This document shows positions 45,701-51,700 of a DNA stretch of 64,000 nucleotides, piece after piece (position 1 is the first letter of the stretch; every line of letters starts with the position of its first letter). The position numbers and the translations under genes were made by a program. Source of the stretch: Macrostomum lignano. Taxonomy: Eukaryota. The notes below the pieces were generated by a model. The model was not told the DNA's origin and did not search any database. It worked only from the letters and a program-made list of their open reading frames with translations. Location: positions 806,001-870,000 of the forward strand of contig NIVC01000061.1 of assembly GCA_002269645.1 (NCBI GenBank), given 5' to 3'.

Positions 45701-48700
45701 GGTCAGGTTGAGAGAATGTGTCAGTCAGTGTGAGTGTGATTGGTCAGGTTGAGAGAATGTGTCAGTCAGTGTGAGTGATTGGTCAGGTTGAGAGAATGTG
45801 TCAGTCAGTATGAGTGTGATTGGTCAGGTTGAGAGAATGTGTCAGTCAGTATGAGTGTGATTGGTCAGGTTGAGAGAATGTGTCAGTCAGTGTGAGTGAT
45901 TGGTCAGGTTGAGAGAATGTGTCAGTCAGTATGAGTGTGATTGGTCAGGTTGAGAGAATATGTCAGCCAGTATGAGTGTGATTGGTCAGGTTGAGAGAAT
46001 GTGTCAGTCAGTGTGAGTGTGATTGGTCAGGTTGAGAGAATGTGTCAGTCAGTGTGAGTGTGATTGGTCAGGTTGAGAGAATATGTCAGCCAGTATGAGT
46101 GTGATTGGTCATGTTGAGAGAATGTGTCAGTCAGTATGAGTGTGATTGGTCAGGTTGAGAGAATGTGTCAGTCAGTATGAGTGTGATTGGTCAGGTTGAG
46201 AGAATGTGTCAGTCAGTATGAGTGTGATTGGTCAGGTTGAGAGAATGTGTCAGTCAGGCTGAGATGCTGTGCCCATGTTTTTCCTCCATCAGGATCTGTA
46301 CTGCGTACGAAGCGACTTGGGCAACCTTTTGAAAGCTCTTGGCCGATTGGACGAGGCCAAGGTAAGTATAACGCGGGTATTGTGTGCATTTGCATCTTCA
46401 TAAAATTGCTCACTAGGCAAGTAAGAGTGCCGCTAGCTAGATAACACCCTGTTTCCCCTTTGATAATAGCTCTAAACTTTGCCAAATTGAAATTAACAAA
46501 AGTACATAGCCTAGAATTTGAAAGTACATAGCTAGTTTGTAAAGCGCTCTCTACTACTAAGAGAGCAAATCAAAGATCGATGAATTCCGTTTTTCGGATC
46601 AGTTATAACTAAAGAAATCGAAACGATTGCATTTTTTTGTTTTCCTTAGACGTCATATAAAAGTGCAATCGCTTTTTCTGGAGTTAAAAAAATATTGAAA
46701 ATTTAATTTGCGTATATTAAATATAAACTATTTGCCCTTCCAAAGCAGACTTTGCCCAGCATTTGAAACAGCGCCATCCTTGCATTTTGTTTAGCCTGTT
46801 GATTTACACCAGCCATGTTGAAGCCATTATTTATTACGTCTAATTGGTGCGGGCTAAGGCCGAGGTTGAGCCTACAGAAATTGGTCAGTGATCAAAAATC
46901 AATAGATAAATTACCGTCTTAAACTATTCAAATTTAACAGTACATTCTGGCACTGTAGGAAGCTCAGCCTTAGCCCCATCATTTTTAGGCATAACTCTTT
47001 CTTTTTTCTCTGGTCAGACTGTGTCCCTGATGCGTTATGCCACTGCTATTTTTATATCTATTTTCCACGCATATTGTCGCTCTGTCAAACTCAATCAAGG
47101 CATTGGAAAGCTCTGTGATAAAAATATTGGCAAATTCAGCTCATCTGATGTTTGTCTTTGTCGCATCAGTAGTATGGCTGGAGGTGCTGTGTGCGAATAA
47201 TTGAAATTATTTTATTTTGTTTTAATCCGTTGCTCGCAGAAAACTGACTCATGGTGCGTGCACCCGCCTCCAGCCCTGCTGCTCAACTTATTTTCATAGA
47301 TGGGCGCGTCAAATTCCCTTTGCGATTTTGAATTCTGCAATTGTGCGAGATGCTTTTTTCCCTTAGACACTCCCATCTCCATGGCAACCAGTTTTTGACT
47401 ATGATTTAGCTGTTGACTAAAGCAATTTGATTACGATCGATTTTGTCGCTTACTAAGTGAAGAACGTTTTAAACAAACAAATAAAATGTTGATACTTTAA
47501 GCGTTCGATTTCTGTTGCCATAGAGACTGGAGGCGTTTTTATCAACCCGCGCCCATCTCTAGGGTCTTTGTCTTTCTTTCTTTTCTGATTGCTTGTTTTT
47601 TCTCCAGATTTTAAAGATTTTCAGTGCTGGAAACTTGTCGGACTTTTTGGTTAGGCTTTTTAATCTTTAGAAAATTTTGGCATTAAAATGCCACTCAAAT
47701 TTCAGAACGTTGCTTTCGTAGACAGCCAGCCAGCCAGCCAGTTTCCAGACTGAACTCTCGGCATTTTTCTCCATATTTTCCTGTTTTTGTCTCCTAAAAG
47801 AGCACTTCTAAAATATTTTTTAAAAGAAAGACAAAGACGCTAGTTTTGTGTTATCATATTTTTGTAAGCGATGAGTTTTGCTGCTTCAAGTGATGTGGAA
47901 TTAAAATACATGTGCAGTTAATTGCACACGGCTTTTATCATTTCTCTATAGGAAAATATTATTTGCAGCAGACCTCAACGCTTGGACTAATAATTTTGTT
48001 AGTGGAGCTTTTTTTGCGGCATATATCAGCATCAGGTGCAATACTACTTTTTAGTAACAAGAACTGATACAAGAATATGTCACAGTTAAAGTTTGTCAAG
48101 ACAGTATCACTCAAATTTAATGTGGCAGGTGAAATTTCCTTTCCTTCCTCGATCGCAGTTTGCGGCCTCAAGAGCATAGAGAAAGAATGAGAAAGAATTT
48201 GTGAATACAAGCATAACTCGGGCAAGAAGTGAACCCAAGACAGACGAAATTCAGCCTAGACGGCAGACCCAATCTAGACCAGCCAATGAGAGAGCAGTAA
48301 GGAGAGAGATCAAAGTCAGACGGACGAAATTCAGCCTAGGGGGGGGGGGGCAGGCCCAATCTAGACCAGCCAATGAGAGAGCAGTAAGGAGAGGGATCAA
48401 AGTCAGACGGACGAAATTTAGCCTAGGGGGGGGCAGGCCCAATCTAGACCAGCCAATGAGAGAGCAGTAAGGAGAGAGATCAAAGTCAGACGGACGAAAT
48501 TCAGCCTAGGGGGCGGGCCCAATCTAGTCCAGCCAATGAGAGAGCAGTAAGGAGAGAGATCAAAGTCAGACGGACGAAATTCAGCCTAGGGGGCGGGCCC
48601 AATCTAGTCCAGCCAATGAGAGAGCAGTAAGGAGAGAGATCAATGTTACATACAAAAAGGGCAAGAGGAAAGCCTAAGAGTATTTGCAAGTTTTCCTGAA

Positions 48701-51700
48701 ATCTTCAGTCTTGAATAAATTTCTCAAGGCAAAAACGCTCACTTTGCTTCTATAAAGATCTAGATCTAGTTATTCTAGTATCTGTGGCGGCAGCAATAAA
48801 CTGATGCTTATATTGTCAAAAAACAAGCATTCCAACTGGCAATGTATTATTGAATGGTTTAGTTTATTTTATATTTTCCAGTGTCTTGTAAAATTATAAT
48901 TTGATTTTGACAATTGCGATAATATCAAATAGATATAATTATATCAGTTCAGTTTGTGTCTCAACAGATACAGAGACGAGTTTGACCAGAAACTGCTGGC
49001 TAAATCAATCGGCTTACAAAAGCTGGGACTAAATTCCTTTAAGCTAACAAAAATGAAAAAAAAAATATCTAAATATTATAAAAACAGATGCAGTGTTTTG
49101 AATGGCGGGCAGATTTTGAAAGTGAGAAGCAGTTTGATCTGTCTCATTAAGGCCAGGACCACCAGCAGTTGAAGGCGCTAAAAGTCCAACCCACTAAAAA
49201 GCTCGGCATTCCAGTTTTGTTGTTTGCGATTTGAAAAAAAAGCAAAACTTTTCCAAACCTTGGCTATTACGGATTCAGACGATTTGTTGTTTCAGACTAT
49301 GAGCACTGTGACTCTCACTGTGACAGCCTCTTCGCTACTGCTGTGAACAGCTTCAGGTATTTAATTGCCAATTTATGTTTTTTGAAATATTAAAACTGCA
49401 ATTGATTTGTGCCAACGACTGTGCTAAATATATATCAGCTCATTTTTTGCATTCCAACATTTTTAAAAGAGGTTGTTAAAAAGTGTAAGCCCGATGTTCC
49501 TGTTCTGTGTGAATAAAGCTTTCACAATTTCTGTGGAAATTGTTGACAGTTTTATTTCATTAAACAGCGCCAAAGTCTTTCAACTTTAGCAATTCTCTCA
49601 TTTTCAAACGTTTTTCTGGTATCAGTTTTTTTGCGTCTTGTATATTTTATGAATTATGATAGAAAATTTTCGGAGCAAAGCTGTCCTACTTCAGTAACAC
49701 AGTTTCCATCGATTCGTGTTCTTGTGTCTCTTTTTGTAACAATATTTTGTTTAACTACTGTTGCAACATTTTAACAAAAATAGTAAGTAAAACGCGTTTT
49801 TTCTATTGTACATGGACTACTGACAGAAGTAGTAGTATATTTTTGTATGCTTTTGTTATAACTCAGCTCTGAATTTAAGGAAAAGATTTTTTCCAGTAAA
49901 AAAACAAAACGTAAATTAACACACTTGAAATACTACTATTAGTAGGTGAATGAGTTCAAAACTTTGATTGAAATTTTTTTTAAATCAGTTAAAACTTTTT
50001 GAGTCTAATTCCTTGTCCCCACCCACTCCCCCTTTTCACAATTCTCCCCTCGCAATCCGGGATAATCAATAATCCTCAACCACAAAAACGCCCAACATAC
50101 GAACCGCGCTATTTTACCAAAACACGCACAAAAATCAAGGCGTGCTACCTCAAAGCCATCGAAACCTGTCCGACGTTTGCCGTCGCCTGGAGCAACCTGG
50201 GGTGCGTGTTCAACGCGCAGGGCGAGATCTGGTTGGCTATTCATCATTTTGAGAAGGTGAGCCGGCAGATATTCAGTTATTAGTGTTTAGTTTAGTAGTT
50301 ATTAGTTATATAGATTAGGCAGATATTCAGATAGCTATTAGGCAGATATTTGGCTAGCTATTAGGCAGATATTCAGATAGCTATTAGGCAGATATTTGGC
50401 TAGCTATTAGGCAGATATTCAGATAGCTATTAGGCAGATATTTGGCTAGCTATTAGGCAGATATTTGGCTAGCTATTAGGCAGATATTTGGCTAGCTATT
50501 AGGCAGATATTTGGCTAGCTATTAGGCAGATATTTGGCTAGCTATTAGGCAGATATTTGGCTAGCTATTAGGCAGATATTTGGCTAGCTATTAGGCAGAT
50601 ATTTGGCTAGCTATTAGGCAGATATTCGAGTAGCTATTCGGTAGACATTCGAGTAGCCATTGTCGAATAGCCGAGCCACATTCACTCCCTCAAACCTTCG
50701 CCCACACGAAAGGCCGTGTCGCTGGATCCGAACTTCCTGGACGCCTACATCAACCTTGGCAATGTGTTCAAAGAGGCTCGCATATTCGATCGAGCTGTGG
50801 CCGCTTATCACCGAGCTTTGCACCTGTCCAGCAATCACGCCGTAGTGCACGGCAACCTTGCCTCGGTGTACTACGAGCAGGGCCTGATCGACCTGGCCAT
50901 CGAGACCTACCGGCGGGCAATTAAAATCCAGCCAAATTTTCCCGACGCCTATTGCAATTTGGCCAACGCTCTGAAAGAGAAGGGCAGAGTTGGCGAGGCC
51001 GAGGAATGCTACAATACGGCCTTGAAACTGTGCCCGTCTCATGCCGACTCGCTCAACAATTTGGCTAACATTAAACGGGAACAGGTACGCGGCTTGTTAG
51101 ATAAATCTTGGAACAATTTATCGTCATTTTAGTGCCGTTTCCATGGTTCAGTGTACCATTTTGCCAATTGCCATTTCCATAGCTAAATGTGCCAGTTCCA
51201 TAGCTATAAGTGCCATTTTTCCATAGCTATAAGTGCCAATTCCATAGTTATAAGTGCCAATTCCATAGTTATAAGTGCCATTTTTCCATAGCTATAAGTG
51301 CCATTTTTCCATAGGTATAAGTGCTATTTTTTCATAGCTATGAGTGCCATTTTTCCATAGCTATAAATGCCATTTCCATAGTTATAAGTGCCATTTTCCC
51401 ATAGCTATGAGTGCCATTTCCATAGCTATAAGTGCCATTTTTCCATAGCTATGAGTGCCATTTTTCCATAGCTATAAGTGCCATTTCCATAGCTATAAGT
51501 GCCATTTCCATAGCTATAAGTGCCATTTCCATAGCTATAAGTGTCATTTCCATAGCTATAAGTGCCATTTCCATAGCTATAAGTGCCATTTCCATAGCTA
51601 TAAGTGCCATTTCCATAGCTATAAGTGCCATTTTTCCATAGCTATAAGTGCCATTTCCATAGCTATTCCGATGTAAGTGCCATTTCCATTCCATAAAAGC

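Follow-up and report, generated by a model that had tools for sequence, protein, structure and literature searches.

The 3.8-kb intron at positions 46362-50139 of the Macrostomum lignano OGT gene is an ancestral bilaterian spliceosomal intron and the positional orthologue of vertebrate OGT intron 4, and no sequence homologue of the vertebrate silencer/decoy element is recognisable in it. Transcripts from other animals show that, outside vertebrates, intron read-through and the inclusion of poison exons recur at the exon junction spanning this intron (EAK/ACYLK). To our knowledge, OGT is the sole enzyme that adds O-GlcNAc. Mammals buffer OGT levels by detaining intron 4, a mechanism that has been placed in vertebrates only (PMC5588854). 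The retained intron is the fourth one, which separates exon 4 from exon 5 (Park et al. 2017, PMC5588854). Its detention responds to O-GlcNAc, and it contains a 526-nt intronic splicing silencer (ISS) that overlaps a decoy exon of ~150 nt (PMC5588854; Parra et al. 2020, PMC7373989; PMC12017769). The human decoy exon occurs in forms of 143, 146, 150 and 153 nt and has multiple weak splice sites (PMC12017769). The silencer is conserved back to jawless fish, and no ISS-like element is found in Drosophila (PMC5588854).

The window is a 64,000-nt stretch of M. lignano contig NIVC01000061.1. Its OGT gene was delimited by tblastn and by exact mapping of annotated proteins, and the resulting gene model reproduces the full length of the annotated M. 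lignano OGT proteins. Protein P0121 maps exactly on locus L007 (NIVC01000061.1), which is identical base for base to the window across the 16,712-nt OGT gene. The principal features are as follows (a slash marks a splice junction):

39766..56477, + strand: Macrostomum lignano OGT gene, start to stop codon, 10 coding exons
46293..46361, + strand: 69-nt exon, orthologue of vertebrate exon 4, cag/GATCTG...GCCAAG/gtaagt, encoding 23 residues (DLYCV...DEAK)
46362..50139, + strand: intron under study, positional orthologue of vertebrate OGT intron 4, 3,778 nt, GT-AG, phase 0
50140..50256, + strand: 117-nt exon, orthologue of vertebrate exon 5, tcaag/GCGTGC...GAGAAG/gtgagc, encoding ACYLK...HHFEK

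The coordinates that an earlier note had given for a 3.8-kb intron between 69-nt and 117-nt OGT exons are thus confirmed, at 3,778 nt and in phase 0. In each of the four annotated M. lignano OGT proteins the intron is spliced out. The 69-nt exon shows zero differences between the two M. lignano gene copies.

The same note had given the sizes of human exons 4 and 5 and the position of intron 4 between them, and these match at the shark-type L001 and the vertebrate L002-L004 loci; the boundary check was made on vertebrate orthologues in place of human DNA, the proteins being almost invariant in this region. At these loci exon 4 (DLYCV...EEAK) measures 69 nt and exon 5 measures 117 nt; intron 4 is in phase 0, 2.85-3.34 kb long and placed at the same K/A codon boundary as in M. 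lignano. The 69-nt exon and the boundary are also common to M. lignano, the annelid Owenia (L006) and the schistosome Trichobilharzia (L005). The 117-nt downstream exon is found in M. lignano, vertebrates and Trichobilharzia; its Owenia counterpart continues into the following exon, 198 nt in all. At all these loci, then, a 69-nt exon ending in the codons for ...L(G)R(L)xEAK is followed by a phase-0 intron, and coding resumes with (A/S)CYLK.... Because Owenia and Trichobilharzia show the same exon and boundary, the agreement in exon size and phase is attributable to orthology and not to chance. As the boundary is ancestral to Bilateria, however, position alone is no evidence of a regulatory switch. 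The AAG acceptor found in vertebrates and M. lignano was considered as an ancestral weak site and rejected, the acceptor being TAG in Owenia and Trichobilharzia and CAG in an arthropod contig.

Within the gene, this is the longest internal intron and the sole internal one not filled by minisatellite. Tandem repeats make up 10.7% of it, against 67-91% of each of the seven other internal OGT introns, and no tandem repeat was found in intron 1 at a score of at least 200. The description of the intron as the only mostly unique one besides intron 1 is correct on this repeat coverage. At 3.8 kb it is long but not extreme, since M. lignano introns average 1.1-1.4 kb (PMC5730564). Its sole tandem repeat is the following:

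48238..48643, + strand: 80-bp tandem array, 4.9 copies, 406 nt

Each unit of the array carries a CA/GTAAGG motif resembling a 5′ splice site, and in the second gene copy the array is shorter by 168 nt (about 2 units); a decoy role of the units would be speculation. Comparison with roughly 100 kb of M. lignano sequence gave no second copy of any segment of the intron, and a dispersed repeat or transposable element was rejected on this basis. Known RNA genes were likewise rejected, with two sub-threshold chance matches in Rfam at E <= 1 and none in a tRNA scan. Open reading frames inside the intron are of 89 residues or fewer.

From shark to a second vertebrate, the silencer/decoy block shows 75-78% identity across about 300 + 140 nt. 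When it was compared with the M. lignano intron by blastn at word size 7, the matches were scattered and non-collinear, with E >= 0.037. A three-sequence nhmmer profile of the block gave negative scores and E >= 3 in both M. lignano copies, E = 2.2 in the Owenia intron and nothing reported in the Trichobilharzia intron. The second genomic copy of the M. lignano intron (L008) is 3,607 nt long and about 95% identical, and the 111 substitutions and 25 indels that separate the two copies are distributed as by chance. The longest clean run between them is 174 nt, where simulation gives 152 on average and 216 at the 95th percentile. At ~95% identity the intron is on a par with the non-coding DNA around it (92-97%), and divergence at four-fold sites is 5.3%. 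Between the two M. lignano copies no intronic block stood out as conserved above the neutral background, in a comparison of low power at 5% divergence. The first 800 nt of the intron hold 15 events where 28.8 are expected (Poisson p = 0.004) and were considered as constrained; they are not counted as such because the segment was picked post hoc and its divergence corresponds to the lower end of that in the flanking non-coding DNA.

The splice sites of the intron and one candidate internal exon are listed below. All scores come from a generic PWM and not from an M. lignano model.

46359..46367, + strand: 5′ splice site AAG/GTAAGT, a consensus match (crude PWM 11.8, strongest donor in the OGT gene)
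47018..47253, + strand: candidate poison exon of 236 nt, speculative, with strong acceptor-like TTTCTTTTTTCTCTGGTCAG/ (AG at 47016-47017) and donor-like ATG/GTGCGT at 47254
50004..50139, + strand: 136-nt AG-free zone ending in the acceptor ...acacgcacaaaaatcaag/G

The acceptor at 50139 scores -13.2 with the crude PWM and is the weakest in the OGT gene, where the others range from -1.8 to +8.1. A C-rich tract lies ~80-125 nt upstream of it and the final 30 nt are purine/A-rich. The AG-free zone is present in the second gene copy with two substitutions. Read-through at 46361 is predicted to add 13 codons before a stop, giving a 177-residue product. Inside the intron, four acceptor-like and five donor-like sites reach a score of at least 6 with the generic PWM, and 4/4 of the former and 3/5 of the latter recur in the second copy. 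An enrichment of pseudo splice sites (4 acceptor-like against 0.5 expected from mononucleotide shuffles) disappeared against real control regions and was rejected; the density of 1.07 acceptor-like sites per kb lies inside the control-region range of 0-2.3 per kb. The candidate exon at 47018-47253 has an in-frame stop at 47198-47200 and overlaps the longest difference-free stretch between the two copies (47021-47194). The density of such sites and the length of the difference-free run both stay within background, and use of the segment as a poison exon is speculative.

Transcript evidence at the junction was sought with a query that ended before it, and the best 120 short N-terminal OGT ORFs were taken. 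Among these, 82 break after ...EAK and 33 after the previous junction; the corresponding figures for non-vertebrates are 71 and 30 (QYNP), all counts being of clusters that are mostly of unknown taxon, are not phylogenetically independent and include some gene-model artefacts. In non-vertebrates, non-Val tails follow 25 of the 71 EAK breaks and 0 of the 30 QYNP breaks (Fisher p = 3.5e-5). The non-Val tails must derive from splicing to an alternative exon. The same search recovered the known vertebrate detained intron, with 11-14 vertebrate-like read-through ORFs (tails e.g. VGV, VGVA). The neighbouring OGT intron is likewise read through in many assemblies.

Several individual transcripts illustrate these events. 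Cuttlefish OGT mRNA from two SRA runs contains, exactly at the EAK junction, a 262- or 245-nt cassette that introduces a premature stop. The cassette has two donors 17 nt apart and is missing from normal mRNAs of the same species; a look-up of the cassette in genomic DNA gave transcript contigs only. A crustacean OGT contig carries a 722-nt insert at the junction that ends in a polypyrimidine tract and TAG. In an arthropod-type metatranscriptome contig (L012), a complete GT...AG intron of 1,817 nt is retained, and the remaining 860-residue OGT ORF is uninterrupted. The Schistosoma japonicum cDNA C1LKX2 (P0137) reads through the intron with the tail VRRHTSRRGA, which corresponds to VRRHMSRRGA as read from the homologous intron of Trichobilharzia. 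A Drosophila sequence annotated as ‘isoform X3’ (P0212) breaks after ...EAK and continues with a non-Val tail. Insects are also among the non-vertebrates with read-through or alternative tails at the EAK junction. The cuttlefish and crustacean inserts bear no sequence relationship to the M. lignano intron. For the predicted 177-residue M. lignano product, the best match is 85% identical, and neither a retained-intron ORF nor any other short OGT ORF derived from M. lignano was recovered; this search says little about retention in M. lignano because the database seems to be without M. lignano transcript assemblies. Taken across animals, unproductive splicing at this OGT intron probably predates the vertebrates.

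The earlier note had proposed that the nutrient-feedback splicing switch of vertebrates may be conserved in this lineage. The positional orthology and the recurrent read-through and poison exons at the junction in other invertebrates bear out part of that proposal; the absence of an ISS/decoy homologue and of a conserved block, the ancestral position, the splicing of all four annotated proteins at this site and the read-through of the neighbouring intron tell against the rest. The best explanation, which we hold with just under even confidence, is that this is the least efficiently spliced OGT intron of M. lignano and gives rise to unproductive RNAs that lower OGT output. Under this explanation the intron would be the slowest or least efficiently spliced in the gene, and a fraction of OGT transcripts would keep it or splice into a cryptic internal exon, because it is the longest internal intron and combines a consensus donor with the poorest acceptor. 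Both kinds of RNA would be unproductive, being detained in the nucleus or removed by NMD, so that OGT output would fall, and the cis-elements involved would be lineage-specific. It is also quite conceivable, at somewhat below an even chance, that the intron is an ordinary constitutive one at an inherited position, consisting of neutral filler that has escaped minisatellite expansion, and that its match to the vertebrate intron is functionally meaningless here. Such an intron would fit the boundary common across Bilateria, the lack of an ISS homologue, the neutral-like divergence of the two M. lignano copies, the splicing of every annotated M. lignano protein at this site, the empty Rfam and tRNA scans, the background density of splice-site-like motifs and a length that is not extreme against the 1.1-1.4 kb average (PMC5730564), as well as the lack of an ISS-like element in Drosophila (Park et al. 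2017, PMC5588854). It sits less easily with the pairing of the weakest acceptor in the gene with the best donor, and the recurrent retention and poison exons at the junction in molluscs, arthropods and a schistosome are hard to explain if the intron is unremarkable outside vertebrates.

A full equivalent of the vertebrate switch, in which retention would rise at high and fall at low O-GlcNAc through a flatworm-specific decoy exon or silencer and the loop would descend from the bilaterian ancestor, appears unlikely. All points in favour of the inefficiently spliced intron apply to it as well, and the cuttlefish donors 17 nt apart recall the multiple weak sites of the human decoy. However, no paper on O-GlcNAc-tuned OGT splicing, and no data on O-GlcNAc responsiveness, were found for any invertebrate in the literature searched, and no conserved element was identified in M. 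lignano. The cis-sequences are, moreover, unrelated between phyla, and convergence on a long weak intron is therefore inseparable from inheritance. In mammals, an OGT isoform starts within intron 4. A comparable internal start in M. lignano, with an alternative promoter or a spliced-leader trans-splice acceptor feeding the exon at 50140, is very improbable. About 39% of M. lignano genes are trans-spliced (PMC5730564), the long AG-free, C-rich tract before an unusual acceptor could serve a trans-splice site, and the frame is open for 47 codons upstream of this exon (ORF 49999-50283). Those 47 codons, however, hold no ATG, so that an mOGT-like start codon just upstream of the exon was rejected, and no N-terminally truncated M. 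lignano OGT is annotated.

If the preferred reading of inefficient, unproductive splicing is extended to other phyla, unproductive OGT splicing at this intron, by retention or poison exon, would be bilaterian-wide and older than the vertebrate silencer, with each lineage using its own cis-elements and M. lignano representing the flatworm version; we regard this as possible but rather doubtful. Unproductive splicing here in flatworms, molluscs and arthropods would make the feedback node ancient and free of any dependence on the vertebrate silencer sequence. The homeostatic loop that ties OGT splicing to O-GlcNAc would then be hundreds of millions of years older than the ‘conserved to jawless fish’ of the literature, and the sensor would be sought in features of the intron and the exons beside it instead of in a single conserved RNA element. 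The question would also become testable in tractable invertebrates. M. lignano is accessible to RNAi. Transgenesis has been established in this species (PMC5730564). If the intron is constitutive in M. lignano, the finding is that of a well-conserved intron position.

Compared with vertebrate OGT intron 4, the M. lignano intron has the same codon boundary, phase and flanking 69- and 117-nt exons, a length of the same kilobase order and an AAG acceptor, and read-through gives a truncated N-terminal product in both (predicted in M. lignano). The two differ in that the vertebrate intron contains the silencer/decoy sequence, of which the M. lignano intron has no recognisable homologue, and in that the vertebrate block keeps 75-78% identity from shark to a second vertebrate, whereas the M. 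lignano intron is no more conserved than its surroundings. Retention of the vertebrate intron is O-GlcNAc-responsive; in M. lignano both retention and such a response are hypothetical. Decoy-exon-mediated intron retention is also described for SF3B1 intron 4 and SNRNP70 intron 7 (Parra et al., PMC7373989). The M. lignano intron resembles these in being long, in its internal splice-site-like motifs and in the stop-carrying candidate exons that can be drawn in it, but its candidate sites occur at background density. An invertebrate OGT (sxc) is controlled post-transcriptionally through an intron in an exon junction complex-dependent manner (2010 work cited in PMC5588854). This is likewise an intron-based control of an invertebrate OGT; it differs in its exon junction complex mechanism, for which no sensing of O-GlcNAc is known.

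SR proteins and other splicing factors autoregulate through poison cassette exons, or unproductive splicing, coupled to NMD. The frame-disrupting inserts at the OGT junction in cuttlefish and crustacean transcripts are alike in form to poison exons of this type and are the invertebrate events nearest to the M. lignano intron.

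The OGT gene of M. lignano, a free-living flatworm, comprises ten coding exons on the plus strand, placed by tblastn with vertebrate OGT followed by inspection of splice sites, and the full model is 100% identical to the annotated M. lignano OGT (P0001) in a protein search. The deposited locus (L007; GCA_002269645.1, NIVC01000061.1) equals the window base for base across the 16,712-nt gene. The protein cluster containing M. lignano OGT has four M. lignano members, with NCBI loci for two, and all four annotated proteins are spliced across the intron studied here.

Coding exons of M. 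lignano OGT (window positions)
39766–39793, plus strand: exon 1
44396–44790, plus strand: exon 2
46293–46361, plus strand: exon 3, 69 nt
50140–50256, plus strand: exon 4, 117 nt
50713–51084, plus strand: exon 5
51831–52292, plus strand: exon 6
52952–53410, plus strand: exon 7
53907–54317, plus strand: exon 8
54959–55313, plus strand: exon 9
55921–56477, plus strand: exon 10

In one annotated isoform, P0123 (1014 aa), 60 residues encoded within exon 8 (53907–54317), FPHMS...AIDLR, are missing, which implies an internal, exitron-like splice in the variable intervening region of OGT.

The earlier note had described a 3.8-kb intron between the 69-nt and 117-nt exons and had held that, of the OGT introns, only it and intron 1 consist mostly of unique sequence; both observations are borne out. 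The focal intron occupies 46362–50139 (3,778 nt, GT–AG, phase 0), and its one array (406 nt, 80-bp unit) makes up 10.7% of its length, compared with 67–91% in the other seven internal introns, each of which has a minisatellite of its own (Tandem Repeats Finder). Intron 1 contains no array at a score of at least 200. The locus is present twice in the assembly (GCA_002269645.1), and the second, syntenic copy (L008; NIVC01001134.1) has matching minisatellites in its OGT introns wherever the two copies were aligned, with different copy numbers.

Minisatellites of the seven other internal OGT introns, with intron length in the window and in L008
44791–46292: 41-bp unit, 91% array; 1502 nt versus 819 nt
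50257–50712: 23-bp unit, 74% array; 456 nt versus 249 nt
51085–51830: 21-bp unit, 67% array; 746 nt versus 1392 nt
52293–52951: 20-bp unit, 82% array; 659 nt versus 813 nt
53411–53906: 27-bp unit, 88% array; 496 nt versus 307 nt
54318–54958: 31-bp unit, 83% array; 641 nt versus 424 nt
55314–55920: 32-bp unit, 73% array; 607 nt versus 1079 nt

Elsewhere in the window, a 6.7-kb satellite array (238-bp unit, 28 copies, 97% matches) lies at 26869–33591, and numerous further micro- and minisatellites occur throughout the first 35 kb.

In vertebrates, the O-GlcNAc-responsive retained intron is the fourth of OGT and lies between its exons 4 and 5 (Park et al., 2017; PMC5588854). The exon sizes given in the earlier note for human OGT were found in the vertebrate loci L001 (cartilaginous fish, GCF_021869965.1) and L002–L004 (a second vertebrate), with 69 nt (DLYCV...EEAK) and 117 nt, and the exon boundaries place the focal intron at the position of vertebrate intron 4, which is also of phase 0 and is 3,340 nt or about 2,850 nt long. 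The annelid Owenia fusiformis and the schistosome Trichobilharzia szidati have the same 69-nt exon and K/A boundary, with introns of 3,627 nt and 477 nt, respectively; in T. szidati, both introns adjoining the latter measure 34 nt. Since this boundary is common to vertebrates, annelid and schistosome, it was already present in the bilaterian ancestor, and a match to the vertebrate position is therefore expected in any lineage that kept the intron. Position alone is thus no evidence for a conserved switch. The rare acceptor AAG ends both the M. lignano introns at 50137–50139 and 50710–50712 and vertebrate introns 4 and 5 (L001–L004). Because Owenia, Trichobilharzia and an arthropod contig have TAG or CAG at the focal junction, this match is probably a coincidence.

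The introns 4 of the shark-type locus and the second vertebrate share a block of approximately 300 + 140 nt (75–78% identity) in which a TACTAAC resembling a branch point, a polypyrimidine tract and TAG/AAGG...GGTAACGG agree with the decoy exon as published. The block has no match, by blastn or by an nhmmer profile built from it, in the corresponding introns of M. lignano, Owenia and Trichobilharzia. In the searched literature, conservation of the element extends no further back than jawless fish, with none in Drosophila (Park et al., 2017; PMC5588854). As this conserved element is a defining feature of the vertebrate detained intron and was sought in the M. lignano intron without being found, the focal intron is not placed in the vertebrate family; it is possibly a variant of the same kind. 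It is an ancestral OGT intron and, by position, the orthologue of the detained intron of vertebrates, whose cis-element it lacks.

The L008 copy was compared with window positions 19220–64000, and in both loci OGT is preceded by an amino-acid permease gene and followed by a Pro/Gly/Gln-rich ORF of 211 residues. The second copy is in keeping with the chromosome duplication described for DV1, the line that was sequenced (Wudarski et al.; PMC5730564). The L008 focal intron (3,607 nt) is approximately 95% identical to that of the window, from which it differs by 111 substitutions and 25 indel events, while flanking non-coding DNA is 92–97% and exons are 98.7% identical, and the difference at four-fold degenerate sites is 5.3%. 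The longest difference-free run within the intron is 174 nt; when the differences are placed at random, this run averages 152 nt and reaches 216 nt at the 95th percentile. No constraint above the neutral surroundings was detected between these two copies, whose 5% divergence gives little power. Segments of the focal intron do not recur elsewhere in the M. lignano DNA compared (roughly 100 kb), and it contains no Rfam family above threshold and no tRNA by tRNA scan.

On a crude generic matrix that is not specific to M. lignano, the focal donor (AAG/GTAAGT) is the top-scoring donor in the gene (11.8), and on the same basis the acceptor (...acacgcacaaaaatcaag/G) scores by far the lowest, at −13.2 versus −1.8 to +8.1 elsewhere. 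The 136 nt preceding this acceptor are free of AG, with the pyrimidine-rich part 80–125 nt upstream, an arrangement kept in both copies. The following internal sites are leads only, because their acceptor-like density (1.07 per kb) lies within the range of control regions (0–2.3 per kb).

47017, 47607, 47951 and 48158, plus strand: four strong acceptor-like sites
47018–47253, plus strand: speculative candidate poison exon of 236 nt built from these sites, with a stop at 47198

Transcripts of other invertebrates carry insertions at the same junction. In the cuttlefish Acanthosepion pharaonis, two OGT mRNAs from independent SRA runs (Logan SRR30931879 and SRR25097170; L009 610–871 and L010 614–858; 100% identity to P0008) contain 262 or 245 nt exactly at the EAK/ACYLK exon junction, homologous to vertebrate exon 4/5. 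The two forms have donors 17 nt apart (AAG/GTATTG...), and the insert, a cassette exon whose first bases are not GT, shifts the frame and introduces a stop; normal mRNAs of this species (L015, L016) are without it. In a crustacean contig (L011; 99% to P0005, 90% to Armadillidium), a 722-nt insert ends in a polypyrimidine tract and TAG, and represents partial retention via an upstream acceptor. A 5.5-kb arthropod-type contig (L012; JGI 3300019019) keeps a complete 1,817-nt GT...AG intron here (738–2554), while the other 860 residues of its ORF are uninterrupted, and the ORF is found again in JGI 3300019007 and Logan ERR1712209, on one contig each. The mammalian OGT-RI isoform is built in this way, although the source species may have no further introns. 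The Schistosoma japonicum cDNA C1LKX2 (P0137) continues past EAK as VRRHTSRRGA, and since this tail matches the translated Trichobilharzia intron (VRRHMSRRGA), it reads through the homologous intron, the first ~30–36 nt of which are kept between the two schistosomes (L005 1610–1645).

Short N-terminal OGT ORFs were surveyed in transcript assemblies, metatranscriptomes, cDNAs and gene models, using M. lignano OGT residues 1–164 plus 13 intron-encoded residues as a query for a read-through product. Among the 120 ORFs listed, 63 continue across the donor after ...LGRL(D/E)EAK with the Val-first tail that a phase-0 GT intron gives, 36 have a tail after EAK that is not Val-first, 4 stop at EAK, 10 break at the preceding junction (...QYNP) and 4 run into the next exon. 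Named sources include flatworms (S. japonicum, Paragonimus kellicotti), insects (Frankliniella, Photinus, Acanthoscelides, Culex, Anopheles, Drosophila), Cherax (crustacean), Holothuria (echinoderm), several nematodes and, as expected, vertebrates (Melopsittacus, Neolamprologus, Cyprinus). Because this query, ending at the junction, favoured EAK-type frames, the search was rerun with a query ending at QYNP. Its best 120 ORFs comprise 82 EAK and 33 QYNP breaks: 71 and 30 in non-vertebrate frames (<95% identity to the vertebrate N-terminus), 11 and 3 in vertebrate-like ones. The units counted are sequence clusters, for most of which the taxon is not known; they are phylogenetically non-independent, and some stem from unspliced RNA or from errors in gene models. 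Read-through is also frequent at the preceding intron (after ...LQYNP), with all 30 non-vertebrate clusters Val-first (P0225, P0229, P0231–P0233, P0240, P0243–P0268 and others); some of these, with further unspliced introns visible (P0247, P0261, P0263), are probably pre-mRNA or genomic DNA. Non-Val tails, which can originate only from splicing to another exon, occur in 25 of the 71 non-vertebrate EAK breaks and in none of the 30 at QYNP (best 120 ORFs; Fisher p = 3.5e-5). Look-alike non-Val tails recur across clusters (P0153/P0192/P0235; P0168/P0173; P0158/P0185; P0197/P0199/P0217), with the patterns MLR..., TE.P..FWPP, I.KKRS.K and EG..., and their similarity suggests that some alternative exons may be shared within clades such as crustaceans, marine arthropods and Hymenoptera.

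The reading preferred here, tentatively and at a little under an even chance, is that the focal intron would be the OGT intron removed least efficiently in M. lignano, and that inefficient splicing would yield some unproductive RNA via retention or a cryptic exon, in parallel with the transcripts of other invertebrates at this junction. Its main rival, also quite possible if somewhat further short of even, is constitutive splicing with a purely positional resemblance to the vertebrate intron; the spliced annotated proteins and the inherited boundary speak for it, the low acceptor score and the cross-phylum inserts against it. That the lineage of M. lignano has a genuine switch responding to O-GlcNAc, which would be a subset of the preferred reading, is unlikely. 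An internal start of an OGT isoform within the intron is highly improbable, there being no ATG in the 47 open codons upstream of exon 50140.

For M. lignano a functional switch is a possibility, which the cross-phylum transcripts make more plausible than position alone would. Through these transcripts, the idea that splicing control of OGT arose earlier also becomes open to direct test. The searched literature contained no report of intron retention or poison exons at this junction in an invertebrate. Among known systems, intron 4 of vertebrate OGT comes closest (Park et al., 2017; Parra et al., 2020, PMC7373989; PMC12017769). The M. lignano intron differs from it in having no silencer/decoy homologue and no raised conservation, whereas the two share position, phase, flanking exon sizes, kilobase length, the AAG acceptor and a truncated read-through product, the last being predicted in M. 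lignano.
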